The position numbers and the translations under genes were made by a program. The notes beneath the pieces were generated by a model. The model was given only the letters and a program-made list of their open reading frames with translations. It was not told the DNA's origin and searched no databases. A stretch of DNA of 64,000 nucleotides from Ascidiella aspersa (taxonomy: Eukaryota): contig OZ004613.1 of assembly GCA_963924565.1 (NCBI GenBank), forward strand, positions 8,990,001 through 9,054,000, given 5' to 3'. The first letter of the stretch is position 1. Every line of letters starts with the position of its first letter. Shown piece after piece: positions 5,344-58,900 of the stretch.

Positions 5344-8300
5344 ATGAATTTACAGGTAAAGGAGTATCTTCTTCACAAAGAAAGAAGAATTTGTGCGGAT
5401 CATGGGTACAAAGTGGATGATAAATACTTAGGAGGTGGAGCCACAGGTAGAGTATTTTTGGCCCGTCCTACTAAGAAGAAGATCAAATCCTCCGAGAAGT
5501 TGATGTTAGTCAAGAAGAAAAATGAGCAACTTAAGGTTAGCAAATGTTAATTGTGTAGTTTGTAAGTTTGACTGGTTAGGCTACTCAATTTAAATAGGTG
5601 TACTTTCAAAATAAGATAAGTAAAATAGGAAAGCAAATAGTTAATATTTTCATTTTAGAGGAACCTAACGCCAAAGATTTAAAGACCAGATTTTTAAACA
5701 AAGTTTTATAGACCTATTCATTTTTTTTGACAAATCACAATTTTTTCAGTAACTTCCATTTTTTGGCACTTAACTTTTTATTGCCGTGGTAACGATCACG
5801 TGATTTTCTTCAAGCCAAGCGTGAAATGCATTCCAGTCATTATGACGTAACCTTAAAACTGGGCTGATTTTTTTTAACTTGTTTGCCATTACTTACTATA
5901 AGTTAGGGTTAATATCCGTTGAAATAATTTAAATATTACATCAGAAAACCTGAACTGCTACTTTCATTGGCGCGTTTGCGATTTGCAGTTGTATTCAACG
6001 GAAATTAACGTTTATTAGGCCAAAAGTACAATGCAAATGAAGTTATAGTACTTATCGACTTTATTTAGTTAATTACTCGCATCCTTTAGGCAAAAGTTTT
6101 AGAAAAAAACACACGAAACAAGAAGCTTAATTGTGACTTTAAGAAAGCATGAAGATTTGGTGTTCCGCCAAACTTTAGAATGAATAAAATATGTTGGGAT
6201 TTGCTATGTTGTCTAAAAAGCTATATAAAATTAAATGTTTATTTTTCACAGGTTGCAATCAAGATCTGCTATGCGGACAACGGAGCCGACTGTATATCAG
6301 CTTTATGGAGATGCTTACCGGGCGAAATAGGAAACTGCAACAAGTGTTTTGGACTTCCAAACATTGTATGTATAACTGTATAACCTACACGTAAAATTTT
6401 GTGGTAAAAGGGTTGATAAATAAATTAAAAGTTACACTCGCCAGTCGGCGGGTGTGTCGAATCATCCAGACAGATCATGCTTGAGGAAATATCACTTCCT
6501 AAAATGTTAGGTTGCCGTCTGTTCATTTTTTCTGAGCATTTTCAGCGATTAGTTACCCTGCCTTATTTGACATAGATTGTTGACTGCTCTACCGAATGCT
6601 TAGCACTTTTAATCATGTTTATGTTTAATTCGCTTTTGGAATTGCGCAAGGGCGTATCACCAGCGATTTACGCAATATTTGGCCTGTAATCTTTGGGGTT
6701 TCAGATATTGACGCAGAACAATTAATTATTTGCTTAAGGCACTCAGCAGTCTGAATCAGCACTTAGTCCAAAGCAAATTTCTCAACACTTTGGTAGTTTG
6801 TAACTAACCCATTGGTTTTCAGGTGAACCTGTTGGATGTGTTCGTTGCAAGCAAGCGAATATTTATGGTGATGGAGTTCGCGGCCAGAGGCGACCTTCGG
6901 CAAACTTTTAAGGAGCACATTTGCACAAATCCAAAGAGAAGGAGATATTTAGACGAACAACTTGCCGCTCGATATTTCATGGAAATTGCCAAAGGCGTCC
7001 AACAACTGCACACGAATAACATCGCACACAGGTAAAACACTTTCACCATGTTGATAATAATTTAATATTTATTCGAATAATGTAAAATATGCAACCTACA
7101 CTTCTGTTTGGTTTGATATTGATTCTACGCTTTGACGTTGATTCTACGCCAAACTAGAACCTCTAACTATTATTATGCGCCAAATGTTGCACTTTTTTAC
7201 AGTTATAGACTGTTAGTAAAAACCGATATAAAGCATAACGCTATTTCATTACCCTGCAGGTGTTTATAATTTTATAGGCTATTTCATCAGTTTAGCTATA
7301 TATATATAATTTGTGCATTTTCTTCATTTTTGTTTCCGCACATAAACACATGGGAATGCTTTTTTTATACAGCAACACGTAATTATTTTTTTCTTAATTT
7401 AAGAAATTATTTCAGGATTTCACTGCTGTTTTTTTGACATAAAAGTTATTATTTTTTTTTGGTTTTTTGAATTTAAAAACGCTGGTTTGTGTGGTTCGTT
7501 TTGTACCGTTTGGTTGTATTATTTATAGGGATTTGAAACTGGACAACATACTAGTGACAGGCGACGGACAAGTGAAAATATGCGATCTTGGATTTTCCGT
7601 TGCTGCCTCGAGCAAACCTAGTGGTCGACAAAACTTACTTTGTACTACGAATTGCGGTACTCGTGGTTATGTGGCTCCCGAGGTTTCGAATAGACACGAA
7701 ACGCCTTACAATCCATTTCACGCTGATGTGTGGAGCATGTACGTACTAAACGTAGTTTTAAGTTTAGATAATTTAAAAATTCATTAAATTAATACAGATA
7801 CATGAATATATAATGTTTTGAAAACGTTAAGAACAAGATATTATTTATTTTATTCACCTCTATTTGTTTTTTTAGGGGAGTTATTCTTTTTTTAATGACA
7901 AATGGGTATTTGCCATTTGACGGAAATACTACAGACGAAATCTACCAGAAGATTTCAGATTTCGAGGGTCAACCGCTGCCTTTTCGTAAACGTCTCTCAC
8001 TTGGTAAGAAAATATGACAAAATGAACATTTCTTCTTTATTTGCCATTTAACATGATTTTCAAACAGGTTGTAGAGAGTTACTAAATCGCTTGCTGGAAA
8101 GAAATTCAGAAGAAAGGCCGACAGTTGACGAAATTGTACAAGATCCGTGGTTAGCGCAACACACACTTTCCAGGGTAAGTTTGTTTGTGAACTAGATTTG
8201 ATTAACCGTGGTGAATTTCTTACACAATAACTTTGCGTTCCAGGAATCTCCGCCAAATACGGAGCACCTGACTGCTGTTTCTGGCAATTCAGGTTCGTGT

Positions 8301-11300
8301 TAAACCTTCAACGTTATTCAAACATATGCATTTTGTTTGCGAATTAAGAATTCTTCCTCTCTTTTGCAGTTTACAAGTTTCAGTCGACCTACGTCAGCCA
8401 CTACCTGTGGCAACGCATGATGCTGCTGGACGAGCGTCGTAAGTTTCTCCTCGGAGCGGGAAACAGTCCGGAGGACCTTCTGGACGCCGGAATCCTGATC
8501 GCGCTTCCGCTGGAAGACACGGGCGGAATGCGCGTCACCGAAGTCTGGAGGTTGGAAGAAAACGAGCTGCGCAAGTCTGACGTCATCCCCGATCCTTTCA
8601 AGAGGAAGCAGGATCGGAAGACCGAAGTCCTCCAGGATCCCTGGACTTGGTCTCCGGATGTTGAAGAGCCGACCCTCGGCATTCGCTGCGTGGAGCGAGT
8701 TGTTACGGAGTCGCCGTTGCTTGACGAATGGCGGGAATTCATGGAAAAAGGAATAACACCGAAAGGCTACTTGGCGAATTGCATGGTGCATTGCAACACA
8801 GTTGATCTCGCCGAAAAGCCTCGGAGCCCAAAGGAGCCTTTTCGTAAACGCGATAAAGCTGCCGAGAGGAAAGTCAAGTTTGCCGCTGTTCGCCAAAGCT
8901 TGCTCGGTTATCGTCCTAGGAATAGCAGTGACGAAGCTGTTTCTTTAAAAAATGGAAGCGACAAAAGAAGTTCGGGAAAATCAGCGGTTTCTCACGATGA
9001 TTCTGCAGCAATATATCGCACAAAGAATGCAGATAAGGTGCCAATAATTGTTTAATTTAACATCGTTCACTATTTTTATTTTTTGACTTTACAATTGTTT
9101 TTTTGATAATATACATTTTTAGATTGTAAACAAACCTGAACCTAATGGAAACTTGAAAGAACAAATCGACAATCGTAAAAAAGGAAAGAAGACTCAAAAA
9201 TCGAAAATAGCTCAAGCTGATGAAAAGCTATACTCTAAAGGTATATGCATTGTATGTTGGTTAAAAGTACATGATATAAGCATTAATTTTTTTGTGTGTG
9301 TTTACAGTTTTAAAGATCTTGAATTTAACAACGTTATTGCTAAATGCTATATAATTAACACATTTTTTAACGTCTATTATATGTTTTGTCAAGGCTTACC
9401 TTTCTGTTATATGTTGACACGTCTCGTCGTTTTCTGTTGAGTGGCAGGTTTCAGTCAAATTGGCAGACTGCAATTCACTCATTTGTTCTGTCTTGTCTGT
9501 TTGTCTCATGTTGTCTTGTGGTTATCCCCTAACCTCTTCGATCAGCTAAGTATCCCAAGTCTGCAAGAGGCGAACAGACCTAACATGCGTTTCATTGCAG
9601 CTGGAGCCGAGAAACTACAACTTCGAGAAGATAGCGAAAAATCAGTTTGTTCACCGACGTTACATGACTCAAAGGAGCAGGTTAAGACTTTAGATGGACT
9701 AAAATCTGGGGGACTGTCGCATTTGAAAAAGAACCCTAATTCCACCATCAAGATGCAAAGCAGCCAAAGCGTTAGAGACGAGCCACATTCCTGTTCGAAA
9801 GATAAACGTGAGAAAAACCTTTGCAGCAAAATTTCCAAACCAAGAAATGAAGTACGAAAATATAGCGAAGCAGAAAAGCAAAATAGATTTGATGTTCAAA
9901 TTTGTGAGACTCTTCCAGAAGGTAAATATATCAAACATTTTGATGTTTTGTCAACAGTTAGTTCTAACATCAAACAAAACATTAAGTTGAATAAATTTAA
10001 AAATCTTTTAACTAACAATTTCAGAAAATCCTTCTGTCAAATTTTCGAAGCAGAAAATTAAAGAAGACCTTATAATAAAGCCAGTTAATCCGTATGTACA
10101 TCAGGCCGTGCTGGAGCAGTTAGACGAATCTGGCTCTGATGATTTCAAGTCAGCAAAGGTAAAACCGCGATTTGTATTTACTATTTCTTGGATTTGTAAC
10201 GCTAATGTAAATCGGCAAGAATTTTGATTAAAAAAATAGGAGAAGGCTTGGTTTATTTTATCTGTAGAGTTAAATATCCATGTCATGATACAAAAAACCT
10301 TTTACTTTTTCAGTGCAGGCCACATTTAATGCAGCTTGCCAGAATAAATAATCCCCTTTTAATTGACGCACTACAAAAGGTGAATAAACTGAAATTTGCA
10401 AATTGAGTTTGTTTATAGTGTTTTAAAGAAACGAATTTTTGTTATATATTAAAGCAACCCAAATTAAACGAACGATATTTTATTTGCTTTTTTCAATATG
10501 ACAACAAGCTTATATGCATTAACAGCACTTAAAACGGAACGAATTGCAAAAGCTTGAAAAAAGTGTTGCGAAAGACGAACATCCTTTTCAAGTCAAAAAC
10601 ATAAAGGTCGAAAACAACTCGAACCAAATGAAGTACAGCCAAGCAAAACTTCTTAAGGTGCATTTTATTTCTTCCTTTTGTTATCAAGTTTTCAGTTGAA
10701 CTTTTTATTAATTCGTACTTAATTTACAGATGTTGAAACGAGTTGATTTGCAAAAGCTTAATAATGTTGCGAAAATCTCAAATACTTTCAGCGTCGTCGG
10801 TAAGTTACAAAGTACACTTGTTTTTATATAATGCTAAATTGCTAAGTAAGATGTAATAAAAAATTATTTTCTTCATTAAAGAACGACACGACCCTTCAAA
10901 GCCATCCCGAGTTCACGCCAAGTTAAAAGAAGAGCTTTTGAAAGCTAGGGCACGAAGCCGAAGTTTGGTCGGTAAGTTTCTCTTGCATTTTCTATACGTT
11001 GTAACCCCTTAACAGTATTTATGGAGTCGTAATTTTTAAACTGTTAAGTAAAAAACGTATTAAGCATCAATTTTTTCTTAAAATACCAGACATATATATT
11101 TTGCTATAGAAACAGGCATCCTTATTTTCTGTAGAAAAAACAAACTTGTTGTAAAATCATTGTCAAGTAACCACTCAATATAAACTATATATATTGTTAC
11201 GTCACAGATGGGACAATCGGTGCCCCCGTTCACCCTAGTGTCGCTGACTCCTCGTTGAAGAAACAACATTTGCGACCCATCAAAAACAACTCAACAAACG

Positions 11301-12796
11301 TTATCGGTAGGTTCCCTTAAATATCAAAGATTTCATAAAGCCAACTTTAAAACAGTTGAAAATTTTTGTAAGATCACCTTTTAAAAATGTCAGTTAATGG
11401 CTGTTCTGTCGATAAAGCGTAGTTTCTTTACACAATCGAGTAGGCCTGCATGGTATTCTTGCCCTTCAGTTGTATTCTTGCGTTGTATTTTTTTTCCATG
11501 GTATTCTTGCCCTTCAATTTTTATTTTTTATTTTTTGTGATAAATGAAATGTATAACTGTAGTTACCTTGTTTTAATATTTTACTCTCTTTAATTGTTTT
11601 ATCCTCTTTACACCCCACAGAACAACCACCTCCAGCCATCCATAAGAACTGCTCAAAGTCTTCAAGTCTGACGGAGGTTGCAGCAATAAGCACTGAAGTA
11701 GACCGTGTCGTTCCCAGCACCGAATCCAGGCAATCCAACACCAACACTTCGTTCAACGCAAAAGATGGCGCTAATAAACCACAAGAAAGCAGCAGACCGT
11801 TGATCAGAAGACCATTACAAAGGGTCAGACCACATCCGAAAAATGACCAACTTTTGGAATTTGCCCCCAAACGTTGTCCAAAAGTGCCAAAACCACCTAA
11901 AGCTGACCAGAAGTCACCGAAAGTATGTCCATCTGTAATTCGACGTCCAATTGTCGCTGCAATGGCACATATTAACCAAAGGGTTGAAAAGAAAGGACAA
12001 AGCGTTCCTGAACCCGACTTAGCGCAACCAAGAGCGCCAGAGCAGCCAAGACAGAATACAAATATATCAACAGGAATCAAAAAAAGGATTCTTAACGAAA
12101 AGTCGCCAGAAAAACGCAACTCAGAAAACGAGGCCCGGGTTTCAAAGGACGTGTTTTCATCCACAGATATGGCTGAAAAAATCTACGCCCCTCGCCCGCC
12201 AGAGAAAGACAAAAAAAACATCAGCGCGAATTAAAAGACCAAAAGGCAAGCCACTATCTGTGCACACGTGCGACAAGAAAGACAAATGCCGAGCAACTTT
12301 AATTCACATCGGAAAACCTCCCGCCTCGAATGCCGAAGATGGTCGAAACACTGGAAACCACAGCAAGTGCGGTTACGACAAAAGCCAAGGGGATCAGCAA
12401 GTAAAGTGTGTGAACACGCCGTCAAATCACGCCAAGCCTCGTTCAGAGTCAAATCCACCAAAAGAAGTCCCAAGTAAACTAGAGCCACCGCAAGCTGGGA
12501 ATTCCCCCGTAGTGAGAAGGGCCTTCGAAGTCGGTTCGCGACGATTCGGCAGAATTCTGCGTCAAAGAATCCCGAATGAAAGCGAACCGCGCGAAGTCGA
12601 GAGAGCGGACTTAAGGCCCGTGCGTCCGCAGGGAACGAAGCCCGACAAACTCCGCAAAGCTCGTGTTGTCAAATCAAGCGAAACAAGGCGACCCGAGCTA
12701 ATAGAAGAGAAGGTAAAGGTCGAGGTTGTGAAAGGCAAGCCGCCGGCTGACCCAAAGCGAAAGAGGTCGGCCATCTTGCAGCGAAAATCCAAGTGA
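5344..12796 (+). CDS. TSSK-like (CAMK group) Ser/Thr protein kinase with long C-terminal extension, copy 1; 17 coding exons; one +1 frameshift in the last exon (A8 run 12211-12218)
   Basis: GT-AG exons joining in frame: 5344-5535, 6252-6365, 6823-7031, 7529-7738, 7876-8003, 8068-8174, 8244-8292, 8370-9037, 9123-9240, 9601-9921, 10025-10158, 10314-10379, 10526-10657, 10730-10799, 10882-10971, 11208-11306, 11621-12796. Motifs: GGGATG glycine loop, VAIK, LPGEI (compare TSSK FLPRE), HRDLKLDN, DLG, TNCGTRGYVAPE, PYNPFHADVWSMGVIL, LPFD, RPTVDEIVQDPW. As written the frame stops at 12234; copy 2 lacks the extra base and runs to the homologue of stop 12796. Confidence 0.85.
9400..9560 (-). other. Putative antisense exon nested in kinase copy 1 intron 9
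   Basis: Minus strand: tctgttcgcctcttgcag| acceptor, ATG at 9509 with an in-frame upstream stop, 36 open codons (MRQTDKTEQMSELQSANLTETCHSTENDETCQHITE), then AG|GTAAG donor at 9400/9399. Conserved in all three copies. Confidence 0.45.
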
Positions 12797-28400: not shown

Positions 28401-31400
28401 TACAAGATCCGTGGTTAGCGCAACACACACTTTCCAGAGTAAGTTTGTTTGTGAACTAGATTTGATTAACTCTGGTGAATTTATTACACAATAACTTTGC
28501 GTTCCAGGAATCTCCGCCGAATACGGAGCACCTGACTGCTGTTTCTCGCAATTCAGGTTCGTGTTAAATATTCAACGTTATTTAAACATATGCATTTTGT
28601 TTGCGAATTAAGAATTCTCTCTCGCTTTCTCAGTTTACAAGTTTCAGTCGACCTACGTCAGCCACTACCTGTGGCAACGCATGATGCTGCTGGACGAGCG
28701 TCGTAAGTTTCTCCTCGGAGCGGGAAACAGTCCGGAGGACCTTCGGGACGCCGGAATCCTGATCGCGCTTCCGCTGGAAGACACGGGCGGAATGCGCGTC
28801 ACCGAAGTCTGGAGGTTGGAAGAAAACGAGCTGCGCAAGTCTGACGTCATCCCCGACCCTTTCAAGAGGAAGCAGGATCGGAGGAGCGAAGTCCTACAGG
28901 ATCCCTGGACCTGGTCTCCGGATGTTGAAGAGCCGACCCTCGGCATTCGCTGCGTGGAGCGAGTTGTTACGGAGTCGCCGTTGCTTGACGAATGGCGGGA
29001 ATTCATGGAAAAAGGAATAACTCCTAAAGGCTACTTGGCGAATTGCATGGTGCATTGCAACACAGTTGATCTCGCCGAAAAGCCTCGGAGCCCAAAGGAG
29101 CCTTTTCCTAAACGCGATAAAGCTGCCGAGAGGAAAGCCAAATTTGCCGCTGTTCGCCAAAGCTTGCTCGGTTATCGTCCTAGGAATAGCAGTGACGAAG
29201 CTGTTTCTTTAAAAAATGGAAGCGACAAAAGAAGTTCGGAAAAATCAGTTGTTTCTCACGATGTTTCTACAGCAATATCTCGTACAAAGAATGGATATGA
29301 GGTGCCAATGATTGTTTAATTTAACATTGTTCACTATTTTTATTTTCTGACTTTACAATTGTTTATTTGATAATATACATTTTTAGATTGTAAACAAACC
29401 TGAACCTAATGGCAACTTGAAAGAACAAATCGACAATCGTAAAAAAGGAAAGAAGACTCAAAAATCGAAAATAGCTCAAGCTGATGAAAAGCTATACTCT
29501 AAAGGTATATGCATTGTATGTTGGTTAAAAGTATTCTAAATAAGCATTAATTTTTTTGTGTGCGTTTAAAGTTTTAAAGATCTTGAATTTAACAACGTTA
29601 TTGCTAAATGCTATAGAATTAACACATTTTTAACGTCTATTATATGTTTTGTCAAGGCTTACCTTTCTGTTATATGTTGACACGTCTCGTCGTTTTCTGT
29701 TGAGTGGCAGATTTCAGTCAAATTGGCAGACTGCAATTCACTCATTTGTTCTGTCTTGTCTGTTTGTCTCATGTTGTCTTGTGGTTATCTCCTAACCTCT
29801 TCGATCAGCTAAGTATCCCAAATCTGCAAGAGGTGAACAGACCTAACATGCGTTTCATTGCAGCTGGAGCCGAGAGAATACAAATTCGAGAGGATAGCGA
29901 AAAATCAGGTTGTTCACCGACGTTACATGACTCAAAGGAGCACATTAAGACTTTAGATGGACTAAAATCTGAGGGACGGTCGCATTTGAAAAAGAACCCT
30001 AATTCCACCATCAAGATGCAAAGCGGCCAAAGCGTTAGAGACGAGCCAGATTCCTGTTCGAAAGAGAAACTTGAGAAAAACCTTTGCAGCAAAATTTCCA
30101 AAGCAAGAAATGAAGTACGAAAATATAGCGAAGCAGAAAAGCAAAATAGAGTTGATGTTCAAATTTGTGAGACTCTTCCAGAAGGTAAATATATCAAACA
30201 TTTTGATATTTTGTCAACAGTTAGTTCTAACATCAAACAAAGCATTAAGTTGAATAAATTTAAAAATCTTCTAACTAACAATTTCAGAAAATTCTTCTGT
30301 CAAATTTTCGAAGCAGAAAATTAAAGAAGACCTTATAATAAAGCCAGTTAATCCGTATGTACATCAGGCCGTGCTGGAGCAGTTAGACGAATCTGGCTCT
30401 GATGATTTCAAGTCAGCAAAGGTAAAACCGCGATTTGTATTTACTATTTCTTGGATTTGTAACGCTAATGTAAATCGGCAAGAATTTTGATTAAAAAAAT
30501 AGGAGATTGGTTCATCTTATCTGTTGAGTTAAATATGCATGTCTTGATACAAAATACCTTTCACTTTTTCAGTGCCGGCCACATTTATTGCAGCTTGCCA
30601 GAAGAAATAATCCCCTTTTAACTGATGCACTACAAAAGGTGAATAAACTGAAATTTGAAAAATGAGTTTGTTTTATATCAGTGTTGTAAAATGTAAAGAA
30701 ACGAGTTTTTTTTGGTTTTATAATAAAGCAACCCAAACTAAACGAACGATATTTTATTTACTTTTTTCAATATGACAACAAGCTTATATGCATTAACAGC
30801 ACTTAAAACGGAACGAATTGCAAAAGCTTGAAAAAAGTGTTGCGAAAGACGAACAACCTTTCCAAGTCAAAAACATAAAGGTCGAAAACAACTCGAACCA
30901 AATGAAGTACAGCCAAGCAAAACTGCTTAAGGTGCATTTTATTTCTTTCTTTTGTTACTTCAGTTGAACTTTTTATTAATTCGTACTTAATTTACAGATG
31001 TTGAAACGAGTTGATTTGCAAAAGCTTAATAGTGTTGCGAAAATCTCGAATACTTTCAGCGTCGTCGGTAAGTTACAAAGCACACTTGTTTTTATATAAT
31101 GCTAAATTGCTAAGTAAGATGTAATAAAAAATTATTTTCTTTATTAAAGAACGACACGACCCTTCAAAGCCATCCCGAGTTTACGCCAAGTTAAAAGAAG
31201 AGCTTTTGAAAGCTAGGGCACGAAGCCGAAGTTTGGTCGGTAAGTTTCTCTTGCATTTTCTATACGTTGTAACCCCTTAACAGTATTTATGGAGTCGTAA
31301 TTTTTAAACTGTTAAGTAAAACACGTATTAAGCATCAATTTTTTCTTAAAATACCAGAAATATATATTTTGCTATAGAAACAGGCATCCTTATTTTCTGT

Positions 31401-34400: not shown

Positions 34401-36189
34401 TGGGAAATTTTTTTCAAACTGGGTTCCATAATCCCTTGATCGCTCAGGACTGCCTAATGTACAATTGGAGAATGGACTTGTTACCAGCACTTAAATTCGG
34501 GTTACCAGCACTTAAATTCAAGTGAACCCTGGATAGGGTGGTTGGGAAAGCAAGCCAACTTTAAAGCTCACATTTAAAGGATTTTAAAATATTTTCCGTT
34601 GATTCGCAATAAAACTAAAACGGAAACGTGTTTCCTTTTGTGGTAGTCACCAACACAGTTGATAGGCAAGCAGTGGGCCGCGAGTTATTTTTAAATAGCA
34701 TTGTGTTATTGATGGCCGAATGATAGCCGTATCGTACATTCATTGCACTTTATTTTAACAAATGGTGTGGCATATAATTTTTTAGGTTTAGCTTGGAAAA
34801 GTTTGGCTCAGCTTGGAAAGGCCCACGTGTCAAATGTAGTCTTGTGAGCCTGTAAACTATACTTTTTGCTAACATTAACTTTACGTAAACGCAAATTTTT
34901 CGCGCTTCGCGCGTATATTCTTCTTTTATATAAGGTTTTGTATTATAGCATGTCAGTGTTTTGGCCATTAGGGCGCCGTAGAATAGTCCACTTTAAAACC
35001 AAATATCCCCCTGAATCCGCCACTGTTTTCGTAGAGGTTTTACGTAGTGGGCCATCAATAGCTCCGAAAAGAGTACTTTGGGCCGCAACAGAGAAGTTTG
35101 CCGACCACTGCACTAACAGGTAGACGACGAGATACGCAAGTGGCCCGTGGACTAATCCGAATACACACATTTGGCCCGGCAGTATGGAAGGTTGCACGCC
35201 CCTGGCCTACACTATCCTAAACATATGTTTGATAGCTACCTGATCACCTGATCTTTGGGGCTCAAGGCAAAAAAAAAAACCACTAACGAAAAGTCTAACG
35301 CTTTTTTGTCCGATTTGAAATTATCGACGTTTATGAATTTTTGAAGGAATATTAATAACTTATCCCCGAATAATTGGCGGCCGAGTCATATCTCATTTTG
35401 AAGAGTAGACTCGTAGCTATCACCCTATGTAAGTCACTTAGGGCACATTTTAATTTAAGGGCCGAATATTACTGAATATTAATATTCATAAATATGAATA
35501 TTAATATTTTTATGTTTTTTTAAAAAAAAAGTCTAATTGCTGGCTAGCTTAGGTTGCTTTGAGTAATGTGTAAAAATTTCTAATCGATATCTTGTTTACT
35601 TCCGGAGATATTACGCAAAGAATTTCGAGCTGCAAACTTCCCTTTGGTCCTTCAGTAGGAAACCATGTGCATAGCGTTGGTACGAATAGTACTTTTCCAA
35701 GCGATTTGCGTTCAGGCAACTTAACCTTTACTACTGTAATACATTTTATCAATTAACATCTTTATTTTCAGCATATCTAAATATACTTAAGTTTGCTAAA
35801 TATGTTGCTTAAACAAGAAAACTATAAATATTATAACAGCTAACCTATACCCAAGTAAAAATAGTAACCCCCCAAAACAGTATTAAATATGTGTATGATA
35901 TAGGTTAAAATTTTAATTTAGGAAAGAAACTGTTAAAATAGTCGAGCCTACAAAGTAAAAAAACAACTTTGTGGTTAGGTCCGATTTTTCCAAGAAAATA
36001 TGGTAATCGCCGTCTAAGTTACGATCGATAACATTTATCACCAAAATTCTGGGAAGCGCCGATGATTATGAAGCTTCGACAGAAATAACCCAGAAAAATA
36101 TGTCATATATCACTGATTATTGTCAGGGTTATATACCTTTAGCAAGATATAAATAATTTCCGTGATGGCCCGGGGATAGATGGGGTAAA

Positions 36190-37480
36190 ATTTCCGACTG
36201 GGAAGGAGCTTTTTAAATAACGATGAAACCTTTCTGCGAGGCCGTTGGCTTGTGAGTAAAAGGCGGTGGTTCGGTGCAGGTTAATGCCGAGCAGTTTGTT
36301 TACCGATGACCATAGCTCCGATGTATTCTGCGGTCCGTGATCTGATGCAACATTTGTCGTGATGCCAAATCGTGCCACCAAGTGGCAAACAAATGCCCCT
36401 CGCGCAGTGTTTTTTTTTTTCAAATTTCTCCAGCGGTTTCCCAAATTTTGGACTTGCAACTTTTGGTATTTAAATGAAACACTTGCGGTCTCTTAAAACT
36501 ACTTAGCGGTCACCCAAACCAAACCTTAAAAAAAAACCTGCCCTCGCGCATGTGATAGTTGTTGCATCTTTCATCGGAATCGCTTCAGGTCACCTTGTTA
36601 CCTAAACCATAGTTAAAAGATAAACATTACCTTGAGAAGGTGGAAGCGGGACGACTAAGGCGATATTCACATCGGCAAACTGGACGTTGGACAACGGGTA
36701 ATGCTGTAAGGGTGCGCGCACATGTTGGTGAACCTTTTGGCAAAATATGCATTACTTGTTCCACAAGCCGACATCTTTATTGAGACCGTGCCATACAAAT
36801 TTGGAAGCCACGAGTCCGGGTTGTCCGGATTGAGGGGTGAGACAATCCGTGGATGACGTAGAAAACCTTACGGCGCCAAGATAGTGGCACTATTGGTCGT
36901 GGGTTGCCCATTGAGGTGTCGCAAAAAAAGAAACGTTGTGCCATTTGGCCCGATGGCGACATCTTCTAGTTTTAGGTTGAAAACTGCGGTTCGATAAACC
37001 TGAACCTCTTGCACCTGTTGCGCCTTCGCAAGCTCGCTGTAGTCCAGGTCAACAGAGGCACTGTTTACATTGGTGATTGTAGCGCGCGAAAGTGCATCTG
37101 CAACATGGTTGTACTTTCCTTTGATGTGTTGAACGTCGGTCGCAAACTCTGAATAGTTGTAAGATGGCGTTGTTGACGACTGGACCATGGATCTGAAATC
37201 TTTGCGAATGCAAAAGTTAAAGATATATCATCCGTGTACGCGGTAAAGATACGACCTTCAAGGAAATGCCAAAAATGTCTGATAGCTAAATGCAAAGCTA
37301 ACAGCTCACGGTCGAAAGCGCTGTATTTAAATTTGGGTGGTTTTTAATTGTTCACTGAAAAACGCCACCAATGAACTGCTCGAGTATCCCACCGATTGAA
37401 CTTTCCGGAGCGTCGACCGTTAAAGCCGTTTTAGCATGCTGTTGAGGGAGACTGCGTGCATAGAGTCGCTACACCTTTCT
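36190..37480 (-). mobile_element. Degenerate Ty3/Gypsy LTR-retrotransposon pol fragment (RNase H and integrase)
   Basis: YSAFDRELLA..HLAIRHFWHFLEGRIFTAYTD (RNase H); QHIKGKYNHVADALSR; IHGLSHPSIRTT (integrase HHCC); SDHGPQ..TTAFYSQANGLAERFHRYLK (rve). Multiple frameshifts; no LTRs found. Confidence 0.9.
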
Positions 37481-37591
37481 GTGTGGCTAAAAGCTAGCGT
37501 CATGAAGGCACATTCACCGTTCTAAGTGCATGTTTGTTTGAGGTCGTACACGTTTTTTGCGTTTGTACACCTTTGTATGGTCTGTTGTAAC

Positions 37592-38035
37592 CAGGGCTGG
37601 GGAGCCGGAGCCGGAGCCGGAGCCGGTGCCATTGTTATTATTTTTGTGGAGCTGGAGCTGGAGCCGGAGCCGGAGCCATTTTTATTATTTTTGTGGAGCT
37701 GGAGCCATTTTTCAATTTGTGGTGCGAAAGCTAAGAAATTATATTTTATTCCATCTCCAACGTTAGTTTGCCAAAAGCAATTTTTAAAACTTGCCATTGA
37801 ATAAGTGACTGGTGGCACCGGAGCTGGAGCCGGAATCATTGGGTGTGTGTTTGATGGCTCCGGAGCTGGAGCCGGAGCCAAAGGGTATGAGTTTTACTAC
37901 TCCGGAGCTGGAGCCGGAGCCAAAGGATTGAGTTTTACGACTCCGGAGCTGGAGCCGGAGCTATTTAATAATTGCCTGATGGCTCCGGAGCTGGAGCCGG
38001 AGCTAATACTATTTTACGGTGGCTCCCCAGCCCTG
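37592..38035. mobile_element. hAT MITE with arrays of GGAGCC/GGAGCT subterminal hexamers
   Basis: 15-bp TIR CAGGGCTGGGGAGCC / GGCTCCCCAGCCCTG; perfect TSD GTTGTAAC. Confidence 0.92.
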
Positions 38036-53260: not shown

Positions 53261-55800
53261 TAACACAGGCACGATAGAGAAGGCTGTTGTCCGTCGTAAG
53301 TTGACGTTGCTTGAGATTTGTCCCCGTTAGATGTTTGCTTGCTATTTCGTGTTGTAATCTTGCTGTGCGAAATGTTTTCAGTGTTGCGACCCTCTTCGGC
53401 ATTTGAGGCGTGAAGTTTCCACTGTGAGTTAAAGTTGCTCGATATTTGACCTCCTTGTCGCAAGTGTTCACCGCTAGCGACTTGCTTTTTCGTCGATTCA
53501 TTTGCGCTGATGCACTATTGTCTTTCTCTGGCGGGCGAGGGGCGTAAATTTTTTCAGCCATATCTGTGGATGAAAACACGTTCTTTGTGCAATCCGAGCT
53601 TCGTTCTCTGAGTTGCGTTTTTGTGGCGACCTTCGCGAAGAATCCTTGTTTTGCGCGCTGTTGATATATTTGTATTCTGTCTTGGCTGCTCTGGCGCTCT
53701 TGGTCGCGCTAAGTCGGGTTCAGCAACGCTTTGTCCTTTCTTTTTGACCCTTTGCTTATTATTTGCCATTGCAGCGACAAATGGACGTCGGATTACAGAT
53801 GGACATGGTTTCGGCGACTGGAGTTGGTTGTTCTGTGGGAATGTAAAAAAAGGTGAAGTATACCATTATACGTTGTGTTAACTATTACACATTGTGAAAA
53901 AGACAAAAATGAAGGGCAGAATAACAAGATACATGGTTTAGTGAAGATGTACTCGTATTTTCTAAATAATTAAAAAAGGAATTATACTTTATTGACAAAA
54001 GATAATTTAACCCAGAGATACATTTTTAAAGATCACACAGAAATATGTATTTGTTTTAAAGTTGGCTTCGTGAAAACATTGATATTTAAGGGAACCTACC
54101 GATAACGTTTGTTGAGTTGTTTTTGATGGGTCGCAAAATTGTTTCTTTAACGAGGGATCAACGACACCAGGGTGAACGGGGCACCGATTGTCCCATCTGT
54201 GACGTAACAATATCTATAGTTTATATTGAGTTGTTACAAGCACGTCACAATGATTTTACAACAAGTTTGTTTTTTCTACAGAAAATAATAATGCCTGTTT
54301 GTATGACGAAATATATATTTCTTGTATTTCAAGAAAAAAGTTTATACTTTTCCATGTTTTACTAAGCAGTTTAAAAAAATCTATTATGGGCTTATAACGT
54401 GCAGAAAATGAGAGAGAAACTTACCGACCAAACTTCGGATACGTGCTCTAGCTTTCAGAAGCCTTTCTTTTAACTTGGCGTACACTCGGGATGGCTTTGC
54501 AGGGTCTTGTCGTTCTTTAATAAAGAATAATATATTTTACTACATACCAATTAGCATTTCTTTATAACAAGAAGAATGACTTTGTAACTTACCCACGACG
54601 ATGAAAGTATTCGAGATTTTCGTCACACACTCAAGCTTCTGCAAATCAACTCGTTTCAACATCTGTAAAATAAGTACGAATTTTTACGTCAACTGAAAAC
54701 TTGATAACAAAAGGAAGAAATAAAATGCACCTTAAGCAGTTTTGCTTGGCTGTACTTCATTTGGTTCGAGTTGTTTTCGACCTTTATGTTTTTGACTTGG
54801 AAAGGTTGTTCGGCTTTCTCAACACTTTTTTCAAGCTTTTGCAATTCGTTCCGTTCAAAGTGCTGTTAATGCATATAAGCTTGTTGTCATATTGAAAAAA
54901 ACAAATAAAATATCGTTCGTTTAATTTGGGTTGCTTTATTATTCAAACAAAAATTCGTTTCTTTGCAACACTATAACAAACTCAATTTGCAAATTTTACC
55001 TTATTTACCTTTTGTAGTGCGTCAGTTAAAAGGGGATTATTTCTTCTCGCTAGCTGAAATAAATGTGGCCGGCACTGAAAAAGTAAAACGTTTTTTATAA
55101 TCAAGACATGGATAGTTAACTCTACAGATAAGATAAACAAATCCTTCTCCAATTTTTTTAGTCAAAATTCTTGCCGATTTAAATTAGCGTTACAAATCCA
55201 AGAAATAATAAATACAAATCGCTGTTTTACCTTTGTTAATTTGGAATCATCAGAGCCAGATTTGCTTAACTGCTCCAACACGGCCTGATGTACATACGAA
55301 TTAACTGGCTTCATTGTAAGGTCTTCTTTTATTTTCTGCCTCGAAAATTTGACAGAAGGATTTTCTGAAATTGTTTGTTAGAAGATTTTTAAATTCATTC
55401 AACTTAATGTTTGTTTGATGTTAAAACTCAGGGTTAACGATATATCCTAAAGTATAATATATTTACCTTCTGGAAACGTCTCACAAACTTGCACATCAAC
55501 TCTATTTCGCTTTCCTGCTTCGGTGTATTTTGCTACTTCATTTCTTACTTTGGAAGTTTTGCTGCGAACTTTTTTCTCAGGTTTATCTTTAAATTGGGAA
55601 CCTTGATTATCTCTAACGCTTTGGCCGCTATTCATCTTGATGGTGGAAACCTCAGATTTTTGTCCATCTGAAATCTTAATCTGCTCCTTTGAGTCATGTA
55701 ACGTCGGTGACCGAAGTGCTTTTTCTCCCTCATTTTGTTTTTGTAGTTTCTCGGCTCTATCTGCAATAAAACGCATGTTAGGTCTGTTCGCCTCTTGCAG

Positions 55801-55961
55801 ATTTGGGATACTTAGCTGATCGAAGAGGTTAGGTGATAACCACAAGACAATATGAGACAAACAGACAAGACAGAACAAATGAGTGAATTGCAGTCTGCCG
55901 ATTTGACTGAAACCTGCCACTCAACAGAAAACGACGAGACGTGTCAACATATAACAGAAAG
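55801..55961 (+). other. Putative antisense exon nested in kinase pseudogene copy 3
   Basis: ctcttgcag| acceptor, ATG 55852, open 36 codons, GAAAG|GTAAG at 55961/55962. Intact although the host copy is broken. Confidence 0.45.
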
Positions 55962-58900
55962 GTAAGCCTTGACAAAACATATAATAGACGTTAAAAATGT
56001 GTTAATTATATAGCATTTAGCGATAACGTTGTTAAATTCAAGATCTTTAAAAGCTTAAAAACACAAAAAAATTGATGCTTATTTAGAATACTTTTAACCA
56101 ACATACAACGCATATACCTTTAGAGTATAGCTTTTCATCAACTTGAACTATTTCAGAATTTTGATTCTTCTTTCCTTTTTTACGATTGTCGATTTGTTCT
56201 TTCAAGTTGTCTATGGCTTCAGGTTTGTTTACAATCGAAAAATGTATATTATTTAAAAACCAACATAAAGTAAAAAATAAAAATACTGAAAAATGATAAA
56301 ATAAACAATCAATGGCACCTTATATGTATTCTTTATGGGAGTATGTGCTGCAGAAGCATCGTAAGAAACCGCTGACTTTTCCAAATTTATTTTGCCGCTT
56401 CCGTTTGTTAAAGAATCAGCTTCGTCACTGCTATTCCTAGGACGAAAACCGAGCAAGCTTTGGCGAACAGCGGCAAACTTGGCTTTCCTCTCGGCAGCTT
56501 TATCGCGTTTAGGAAAAGGCTCCTTTGGGCTCCGAGGCTTTTCGGCGAGATCAACTGTGTTGCAATGTACCATGCAGTTCGCCAAGTAGCCTTTAGGTGT
56601 TATTCCTTTTTCCATGAATTCCCGCCATACGACGGCGACTCCGTAACAACTCGCTCCACGCAGCGAATGCCGAGGGTCGGCTCTTCAACATCCGGAGACC
56701 AAGTCCAGGGATCCTGGAGGACTTCGCTCTTCCGATCCTGTTTCCTCTTGAAAGGATCGGGGATGACGTCAGACTTGCGCAGCTCGTTTTCTTCCAACCT
56801 CCAGACTTCGGTGACGCGCATTCCACCCGTGTCTTCCAACGGAAGCGCGACCAGGATTCCGGCATCCCGAAGGTCCTCCGGACTGTTTCCCGCTCCGAGG
56901 AGAAACTTACGACGCTCGTCCAGCAGCATCATGCGTTGCCACAGGTAGTGGCTGACGTAGGTCGACTGAAACTTGTAAACTGAGAAAGCGAGAGAGGATT
57001 CTTAATTCGCAAACAAAATGCATATATTTAAATCACGTTGAATATTTAACACGAACCTGAATTGCCAGAAACAGCAGTCAGGTGCTCCGTATTCGGCGGA
57101 GATTCCTGGAACGCAATGTTATTGTGTAAGAAATTCTCCACGGTTAATCAAATCTAGTTCACAAACAAACTTACCCTGGAAAGTGTGTGTTGCGCTAACC
57201 ACGGATCTCGTACAATTTCGTCAACTGTCGGCCTGTCTTCTGAATTTCTTTCCAGCAAGCGATTCAGTAACTCTCTACAGCCTGTTTAAAAATCCTGTTA
57301 AATGCCAAATAAAGTAGAAATGTTGGTTTTATCAAACTTGCTTACCAAGTGAAAGACGTTTACGAAAAGGCAGCGGTTGACCCTCGGAATCTGAAATCTT
57401 CTGATAGATTACGTCTGTAGTATTTCCGTCAAATGGCAGATACCCATTTGTCATTAAAAAAAGAATAACTCCCCTAAAAATATCAACAAAGGTGAATACC
57501 ATAATTGATATCTTGTTCTTAAAACATTCAAAACATTATTGATCAATATATCTGAATTTTGTGATGTTAATTTTGAAATTTTCTAAAACTATTAGGTGTT
57601 TTTAATACGTACATGCTCCACACATCAGCATGGAATGGGTTGTAAGGCTTTTCATGTCTTTTCGAAACCTCGGGAGCCACGTAACCACGGGTGCCGCAAT
57701 TCGTAGTGGAAAGTAGGCTTTGTCGACTATTAGGTTTGTTCGGGGCAGCGACGGAAAACCCAAGATCGCATATTTTTACTTGTCCGTCGCCTGTCACAAG
57801 TATGTTGTCCAGTTTCAAATCCCTATAAATAATACAAGGGAACGGTAGGTAACAAACAACAGTATCAAGCGTTTCTAAATTAAAAAAAACGATAACAAAA
57901 ATAAATCGCATGTTAGTAAAACAGCAATGAAGTCGATTTCCTAAACTTGAGAACAACTCAATAAAGTGTTGCCGTATAAAAAAAGCATTCCCAGATTCTG
58001 TGCTAAAACAAACGCGAATATAAGCTCAAAATTATATAGCTAAAATATAAAATAGATGAAATAATCTGTAAAATTATAAACAACCGTAGAGTTATGTTTT
58101 TTTTTATATCTGTTTGCTAGTAGACTACACTGAATCAAAAACACGAGTCTTTTTATAAGCTTTTTGTTGATGGGATATTTGTTATATAGCTACTAAAATG
58201 TTTCAACAATAAAAAGTGTTTCAGTTTACTATATACTATACAATTTTTAGTTATATTGTATTATTAATCAGACACATTATTTTGTTTGCAAACGAATATG
58301 CGCTTTCGGTGTAAAACGAATTGCTACATTTGGAGCATAGTGAATGGCAGTTCTAGTTTGGCGTGTAGAATCAATATTAAAGCCCAAACAAAAGTGTAGG
58401 TAGCATATTTTAAATTCAAAATAAATATTTATTTACTAACAACACAAATAAATCAGTCGTACAAAGTGTTTTACCTGTGTGCAATGTTATTCGTGTGCAG
58501 TTGTTGGACGCCTTTCGCAATTTCCATGAAATATCGAGCGGCAAGTTGTTCTTCTAAATATCTCCTTCTCTTTGGATTTCTGCAAATGTGCTCCTTGAAA
58601 GTTTGCCGAAGGTCGCCTCTGGCCGCGAACTCCATCACCATAAATATTCGCTTGCTTGCAACGAACACATCCAACAGATTCACCTGAAAGCCAATGCGAC
58701 TTGTTTAGTAAGTGACTTAACTAGCAAAGGTTGAGAAATTTACTTTTGGCCAAGTGCTGATTGACTTTATTTGCCAGACTGGCGGGTGCCTTAGGCAAAA
58801 ATCGGTCGTTGTAATCAGGCTTTTTGAGAAAAACACAAAAAGCCAATTAATGGATAAATCAAGCTTTTTGACCTAATTCTGATGTTCTGCGACAATTATC

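Follow-up and report, generated by a model that had tools for sequence, protein, structure and literature searches.

Between exons 9 and 10 of a protein kinase gene lies a block of 207 nucleotides (nt) that is exonic on the sense strand, where an alternative 3′ splice site, lying upstream of the canonical exon 10 acceptor, brings it into the transcript. The gene is the first of three copies in a 64,000-nt stretch of the Ascidiella aspersa genome (contig OZ004613.1, positions 8,990,001 to 9,054,000 of the forward strand), which we call the window and from whose first letter positions are counted below. Comparison among paralogues indicates that the block is non-coding exon sequence under strong purifying selection. 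We favor the reading, at a probability of about 0.6, that it is a conserved module for alternative use of 3′ splice sites, its effect being truncating or unproductive, and that it has a site that would pair with U1 small nuclear RNA (snRNA) and would not be cleavable. The features of the block in copy 1 are as follows, with a caret marking a splice boundary:

9394 to 9600, plus strand: the block, 207 nt, an alternative 5′ extension of exon 10.
9375 to 9393, plus strand: AG1, the upstream alternative 3′ splice site, with the pyrimidine tract ATATGTTTTGTCAAG and its AG at 9392-9393.
9368 to 9372, plus strand: a branch-point-like TTAAC upstream of AG1.
9411 to 9454, plus strand: a second branch-point-like motif, TGTTGAC, with a cluster of AGs (9440-9441, 9446-9447 and 9453-9454), as read from the sequence.
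9438 to 9440, plus strand: an in-frame TGA, 15 codons past AG1, which would give the protein tail GLPFCYMLTRLVVFC.
9488 to 9520, plus strand: a U- and G-rich run of TGTCT/GTCT repeats, with GTCTC....TGTCT present in 8 of 9 clade representatives.
9543 to 9554, plus strand: the pseudo-5′ splice site CAG^CTAAGTATC, complementary to U1 at 10 of 11 positions and without G at +1.
9579 to 9600, plus strand: AG3, the canonical exon 10 acceptor, with the branch point CTAAC and TTGCAG; exon 10 proper runs from 9601.

Our RNA evidence is one stranded, paired RNA-seq run (X6), whose reads were placed on 6500-12490. All joints listed for the kinase region in this run are of the GT..AG type on the plus strand and delimit the kinase exons. 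Read depth in the block is ~58 (range 55 to 60), compared with 3 at position 9363 in the upstream intron and ~39 in exon 10, so that the block equals or exceeds the exons in depth. The mean of 30.9 over 9300-9499 corresponds to ~58 if cover starts at 9394, and the mean over 9500-9699 is 53.6. Some reads enter the block from sequence that does not match the locus, 11 of them at 9392 and 8 at 9400. The parts that do not match come from the 3′ end of exon 9 in paralogues on other contigs, pB/pC-like in the 11 reads and pA in the 8, and each of these exon 9 ends has GT next to it in the genome, which means that exon 9 is joined there to the AG equivalent to 9392-9393. The skipping joint, 9240>9601, has 2 reads among those listed; inclusion of the block is clear from the depth and from the paralogue joints at AG1. 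A first-pass annotation, made from the letters of the window, had proposed a sense-strand extension of exon 10. The block is indeed exonic in that orientation, but its start lies at 9394, following the AG at 9392-9393, instead of at 9442 or 9448, and the frame then meets a TGA.

The choice of acceptor has clear consequences for the reading frame. Exon 9 ends in phase 1. Splicing from 9240 to 9601 leaves exons 10-15 open and gives a long isoform; splicing from 9240 to 9394 adds 207 nt, with 15 codons (GLPFCYMLTRLVVFC) and then the stop at 9438-9440. This TGA is invariant in the six close copies of the block, namely those of copies 1, 2 and 3 (c1, c2 and c3) and of the paralogues pA, pB and pC. 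In all 19 copies found in the genome a stop occurs 7-21 codons past AG1, assuming equal exon 9 phase. At least six spliced junctions lie downstream of 9438-9440, and because the premature stop precedes so many exon junctions, transcripts that contain the block are possibly unproductive. A functional truncated protein is equally possible. Reading frames were traced exon by exon.

The host genes are members of a CAMK/TSSK-like kinase family. Several exons match the protein kinase domain PF00069 in Pfam, and the closest solved structures are the CAMK-type kinases CIPK23, TSSK6 and PAK4. The window has a G+C content of ~36%, short GT-AG introns and no N, and is eukaryotic in character; its comparison with itself reveals three copies of a gene of ~9-10 kb. 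These copies, the block in copies 2 and 3, and a large exon upstream of the block are listed here:

~4.7 to 13.3 kb, plus strand: kinase gene copy 1, from self-comparison.
~24.8 to 33.4 kb, plus strand: kinase gene copy 2, from self-comparison.
~60.3 to 51.9 kb, inverted: kinase gene copy 3, from self-comparison.
29657 to 29863, plus strand: the block in copy 2, 98.1% identical to copy 1 and gap-free.
55761 to 55967, minus strand: the block in copy 3, an inverted copy, 97.6% identical to copy 1 and gap-free.
8244 to 9037, plus strand: exon D, a large exon encoding a conserved domain of ~200 residues.

The near-invariance of 9380-9600 among the three local copies, first noticed from the letters, is borne out by alignment, with 97.6-98% identity against 63-92% in the flanks. 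The segment recurs at 29643-29863 (plus strand) and 55761-55981 (minus strand). Between copies 1 and 3, 9394-9600 has 5 substitutions and no indels (97.6%), the rest of the same intron, upstream, is 91.6% identical, and exon 10 reaches 82% over its sole alignable part. In sliding windows identity is 97-99% at 9332-9581 and 63-90% on both flanks.

Conservation extends well beyond the window. In the 308-Mb assembly, where the window is C7:8990001-9054000, a DNA search recovered three further copies at 85-86%, each within a kinase paralogue on another contig (pA, pB and pC). Relative to these paralogues the block shows 84-86% identity from end to end, against 78-83% for the kinase-domain exons, while exons 9 and 10 barely align. 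Its nucleotide divergence (K) is 0.13-0.15, to be set against a synonymous divergence (dS) of 0.27-0.80 and a nonsynonymous divergence (dN) of 0.06-0.14 in the kinase and exon D exons. A sequence-only model (R1) placed the block at 16 loci genome-wide, and an unfiltered search of the family loci raised this to 19. At every one of these loci an exon D homologue precedes the block by a few hundred bases. Thus ~200 nt of non-coding exon are held at roughly the rate of amino-acid-changing sites of the kinase domain, in at least 19 paralogues whose neighboring exons have diverged beyond alignment.

The layout of the block is the same in all 19 copies: a TTAAC-like branch point, a pyrimidine tract with AG1, TGTTG(AC), a GTCT/TGTCT repeat, the motif C[A/G]G^N-T[A/G]AGTATC, (C/T)TAAC and AG3. 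AG1 is invariant in the six closest paralogues, and an AG stands at the aligned place in 19 of 19 copies. Within 9411-9454, TGTTG and CAG/CAA are conserved across clades. From AG1 to C[A/G]G^N-T[A/G]AGTATC the distance is 126-156 nt (mostly 143-156), and the terminal branch point and AG3, likewise conserved in 19 of 19 copies, follow 54-63 nt beyond it. The sequence between these signals shows no coding pattern on either strand. Among the six close copies 38 columns carry substitutions, split 13:13:12 over the three codon positions, and indels of +1 and +3 occur in pA and of -6 in pB and pC. Of the 19 block lengths, 9 are multiples of three, 5 leave a remainder of 1 and 5 a remainder of 2.

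The best-conserved motif of the block in the 19 copies is C[A/G]G^N-T[A/G]AGTATC, the pseudo-5′ splice site. The U1 snRNA encoded in this genome begins with ATACTTACCTG, and CAG^CTAAGTAT of copy 1 pairs with 5′-ATACTTACCTG at 10 of 11 positions, the single mismatch being +1. At this position 10 of the 19 copies have C, 8 have A and one has T; none has G, and GT in register at the site occurs in 0 of 19. Recurrent changes elsewhere in the motif are limited to A>G at -2 and +3, each of which leaves a G.U pair. In the window the motif pattern has 3 occurrences where 0.10 are expected. The site appears not to be spliced out in bulk, since the depth over 9500-9699 fits continuous cover, and none of the joints listed leaves from ~9546-9550. 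The U1 snRNA genes themselves stand in tandem, at least 42 of them and all identical, repeating every 1193 bp (C5:29506522-29578111; L039-L041).

We also weighed a spliced mini-intron of 51 nt at 9550-9600, whether U2-type or U12-type, and rejected it: the same depth profile fits continuous cover, no such joint is listed, and the U12 consensus is poor. For a U12-type intron the 5′ splice site RTATCCTT and the branch site TCCTTAAC are expected; found were GTATC[A/C]C in most copies and a TAAC-type branch, with no TCCTT. The U12 snRNA gene is present as a single copy (C9:21012403).

Conservation of this kind could instead reflect RNA structure, whether of a small RNA hosted in the intron or of a fold acting in cis, or else an element at the DNA level such as an enhancer or internal promoter. 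The minimum-energy fold of the copy 1 sense strand has z = -2.17, and its 13-bp stem places the U1-like motif in a loop. This fold finds no support in the family, however. Covariation was no better than in shuffles, which reached the observed score in 45 of 500 cases and the number of double-change pairs in 358 of 500, and RNAalifold found 0 consensus pairs on the 19 copies, a consensus fold of the six close copies being likewise unsupported. Rfam gave nothing at gathering scores over the whole window, and a relaxed search of 9250-9650 returned only E = 6.2. With no codon periodicity, lengths that are not multiples of three and no covarying structure, the constraint appears to act on linear nucleotide motifs. 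GTCT/CAGAC motifs are over-represented and read depth is higher downstream than upstream of the block, both of which speak for a reading of this kind, but no pile-up of read starts was reported in run X6. Moreover, the conserved edges of the block are splice signals, and the block is found in spliced mRNA. We therefore regard a structure or DNA element in place of a splicing module as unlikely.

A second possibility is that the block is a coding extension in frame, entered at an acceptor that starts the exon at 9442 or 9448 and adding a hydrophobic, membrane-anchor-like insert in the copy 1 clade only. As the first-pass annotation stated, no stop interrupts the sense frame from 9441 onward, and this frame shares the phase of exons 9 and 10; past the TGA it runs open into exon 10 in c1, c2, c3, pB and pC. 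The 6-nt deletion of pB and pC preserves it, and TGTTGAC and the AG cluster, which holds the candidate in-frame acceptors, lie ahead of it. Yet the frame is broken by the +1 indel in pA and by stops or indels that are not multiples of three in most other clades, where block lengths are likewise not multiples of three, so a membrane-anchor insert is not a feature of the family. A third-position excess is absent, and the hydrophobicity follows from T-rich sequence in any frame. The observed junctions begin at 9394, upstream of the TGA, and among the joints and loose ends listed none falls at 9442 or 9448. Together this makes an in-frame insert quite improbable. Selenocysteine insertion or read-through at the TGA was rejected on the same grounds, as the frame beyond it is broken by the indel in pA and by stops and frameshifting indels elsewhere.

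The first-pass annotation had placed greater weight on the opposite strand, where it saw a nested exon encoding a micro-protein or belonging to a regulatory antisense transcript. Its three elements are all present as sequence:

9562/9561, minus strand: antisense acceptor, a pyrimidine tract with CAG, in copy 1.
9509 to 9396, minus strand: antisense open reading frame (ORF) of 37 codons, with ATG at 9509.
9400/9399, minus strand: antisense donor, AAAG^GTAAGC.

A good acceptor, an ATG-led ORF and a consensus donor thus occur together in copies 1-3. The check proposed at the time was to look for minus-strand junctions in stranded RNA-seq; in run X6, 0 of 779 reads over 6500-12490 are antisense and all have the orientation of the kinase, although the locus is expressed. 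None of the three signals survives in pA, pB and pC, although the block itself is preserved there at 84-86%. A substitution has removed the ATG in pA and a deletion has done so in pB and pC, variation at 9398/9399 abolishes the donor GT, and the acceptor reads CTG in place of CAG (9562 T>A). Codon periodicity is missing here too, and the ends of the conserved block match sense-strand splice signals. We consider an antisense exon very unlikely, and the micro-protein reading gives way to a sense-strand one that can be tested.

Finally, a recent gene-conversion tract among the three local copies, with no function for the block, was the explanation that the first-pass annotation had set against its own; conversion does occur in the cluster, given that copies 1 and 3 form an identity mosaic with dS per exon of 0.07-0.34 and a second identity peak of 93-99% over exon D (8082-8931), so that the block is not the sole peak, but conversion among neighbors cannot explain the conservation of the block in dispersed paralogues, where 16 further copies lie on five other contigs (C1, C2, C3, C6 and C9) beside intron sequence that cannot be aligned and exons that are weakly conserved, and where the block evolves at ~1/4 of the synonymous rate, and we give it hardly any credence.

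We return to the alternative 3′ splice-site module and to how it may work. We hypothesize that use of the AG at 9392-9393 extends exon 10 by 207 nt and that this site competes with AG3. An mRNA containing the block would encode a kinase truncated past exon 9 and ending in a short hydrophobic tail that contains Cys, or would be unproductive, and direct splicing to 9601 would give the long kinase isoform. The conserved sequence would then be the regulatory apparatus, comprising two branch-point/AG sets ~205 nt apart, the U/G-rich GTCT repeat and the U1-like site. From the sequence we infer U1 binding at this motif, its effect on splice-site choice and the fate of both isoforms. U1 bound at an exon's length past AG1 could define the segment as an exon, thereby favoring AG1 and/or masking AG3 ~55 nt downstream. 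Because G is absent at +1, the U1-like site would not be cleavable; it would persist in the mature RNA, and an intact 5′ splice-site motif there could lead to nuclear retention. We speculate, tentatively, that every family member carries such a site under selection and that U1, as an exon-definition or masking factor, switches the gene between the full-length kinase and a form with the stop that ends up truncated, degraded or retained in the nucleus. This fuller mechanism is possible, and we would sooner doubt it than assume it.

Several points weigh against the reading as a splice-site module. Among the 15 joints listed, each with at least 15 reads, 9240>9394 does not figure for copies 1 and 2, nine weaker joints standing outside that listing, and use of AG1 is directly seen for the paralogues only. 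The depth in the block pools reads of several near-identical copies, and the RNA evidence comes from a single run. A DNA-level element, for example an enhancer with CAGAC/GTCT, would yield equal conservation. Between clades, some replacements in the 15-residue tail are conservative (LPFCYMLTRLVVFC compared with LSFNYLLTQLLVICC), for which reason a truncated protein and an unproductive transcript are not separable.

If the mechanism holds, the family would have a hard-wired post-transcriptional switch common to all its members, built in a way known to date chiefly from retroviruses and transposons. If it does not, the block remains a plain example of conserved use of an alternative 3′ splice site, one that annotation pipelines will mis-model as intron.

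Other observations concern the gene copies and the window. Exon D has no relative in Pfam or the PDB, and a search of 1.84 billion representative proteins gave three matches only, at 28-38% identity. Its homologues occupy at least 27 loci in the genome, and several are clustered in tandem, with 5 copies at C3:12099432-12134421 and 3 at C1:12341697-12413073 as examples. The block was undetectable on the metagenome-assembled eukaryotic contigs L013 and L014, to which exon D matches P0001 and P0003 were traced. Runs X4 and X5, from organisms B and C, match the window at 95-99% identity, introns included, and are too similar to inform on conservation. Exon D forms the second identity peak between copies 1 and 3, and the local copies are accordingly a conversion mosaic.

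Copy 3 had been called a dead kinase. Its exon D (56319-56932, minus strand) is indeed frameshifted, by indels of +1, -1, -6 and -1, but its kinase-domain exons are intact and, like exons 10-15, still open. Copy 3 is likely a young pseudogene, or else an assembly error.

In copy 1, the listed joints alone leave in-frame stops in exon C (7876-8174) and early exon D (8244-8416), so further introns or alternative forms must exist over 7876-8416. RNA depth falls to 5-7 over 8300-8699. Antisense to exon D lies an ORF of 192 codons (8318-8896, minus strand) with no antisense reads, probably a shadow frame of this G+C-richer coding exon. At position 12211, within a coding-looking exon, 14 of 37 RNA reads and one X1 DNA contig have a 1-nt deletion, which is an allele or paralogue difference. 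RNA reads appear cut at the repeat 11511-11541, and an exon 16 boundary may lie near 11354. Elsewhere in the window, 36001-38000 is the G+C-richest part (0.46) and contains a direct repeat, 37810-37963 against 37852-38005.

The block has counterparts among known systems, each of which it resembles in part. Poison exons and unproductive splicing (alternative splicing coupled to nonsense-mediated decay) are highly conserved, as in the SR-protein genes, and among kinases a conserved, self-regulated alternative region surrounds exon 4 of CLK1/CLK4. Like poison exons, the block is an alternative segment with an in-frame stop upstream of many junctions, it is more conserved at the nucleotide level than the neighboring coding exons with no coding signature, and it is common to paralogues. 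It differs in being a 5′ exon extension made through an upstream 3′ splice site, as opposed to a cassette exon. Its host is also not an RNA-binding protein, as with the SR-protein poison exons, but a CAMK/TSSK-like kinase family.

In exon definition, U1 bound to a 5′ splice site promotes splicing to the 3′ splice site that lies upstream of it. The distance from AG1 to the U1-like site in the 19 copies, 126-156 nt, is a typical internal-exon length and would suit such an arrangement. The difference is that the "5′ splice site" of the block would be uncleavable, so that an extended exon would result in place of a cassette exon; this comparison is drawn from the layout of the motifs.

Mature mRNAs with an intact 5′ splice-site motif are reported to undergo nuclear retention and decay through U1-70K and ZFC3H1 (PMC9074902). 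The block-containing mRNA would likewise keep a U1-complementary motif in its mature form, though in this case the motif is without GU.

Further parallels are with decoy 5′ splice sites. In exon 3 of the Drosophila P element, pseudo-5′ splice sites bind U1 small nuclear ribonucleoprotein (snRNP) and are not spliced. In Rous sarcoma virus's negative regulator of splicing (NRS), a decoy 5′ splice site binds U1 snRNP and remains unspliced (PMC3082916). The site in the block shares with these decoys a strong complementarity to the 5′ end of U1, a position near real splice sites and conservation, and it too would not be used for cleavage. Unlike them, it belongs to a cellular gene family and has no G at +1 in any of the 19 copies, and binding of U1 is putative; its position also differs, being an exon's length past an alternative 3′ splice site and ~55 nt before the canonical one. 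Should the U1-decoy mechanism prove true, the block would be a cellular, family-wide case of splice-site choice by a non-cleavable 5′ splice-site mimic, and would offer a natural system for exon definition, unproductive splicing and retention through 5′ splice-site motifs outside vertebrates.

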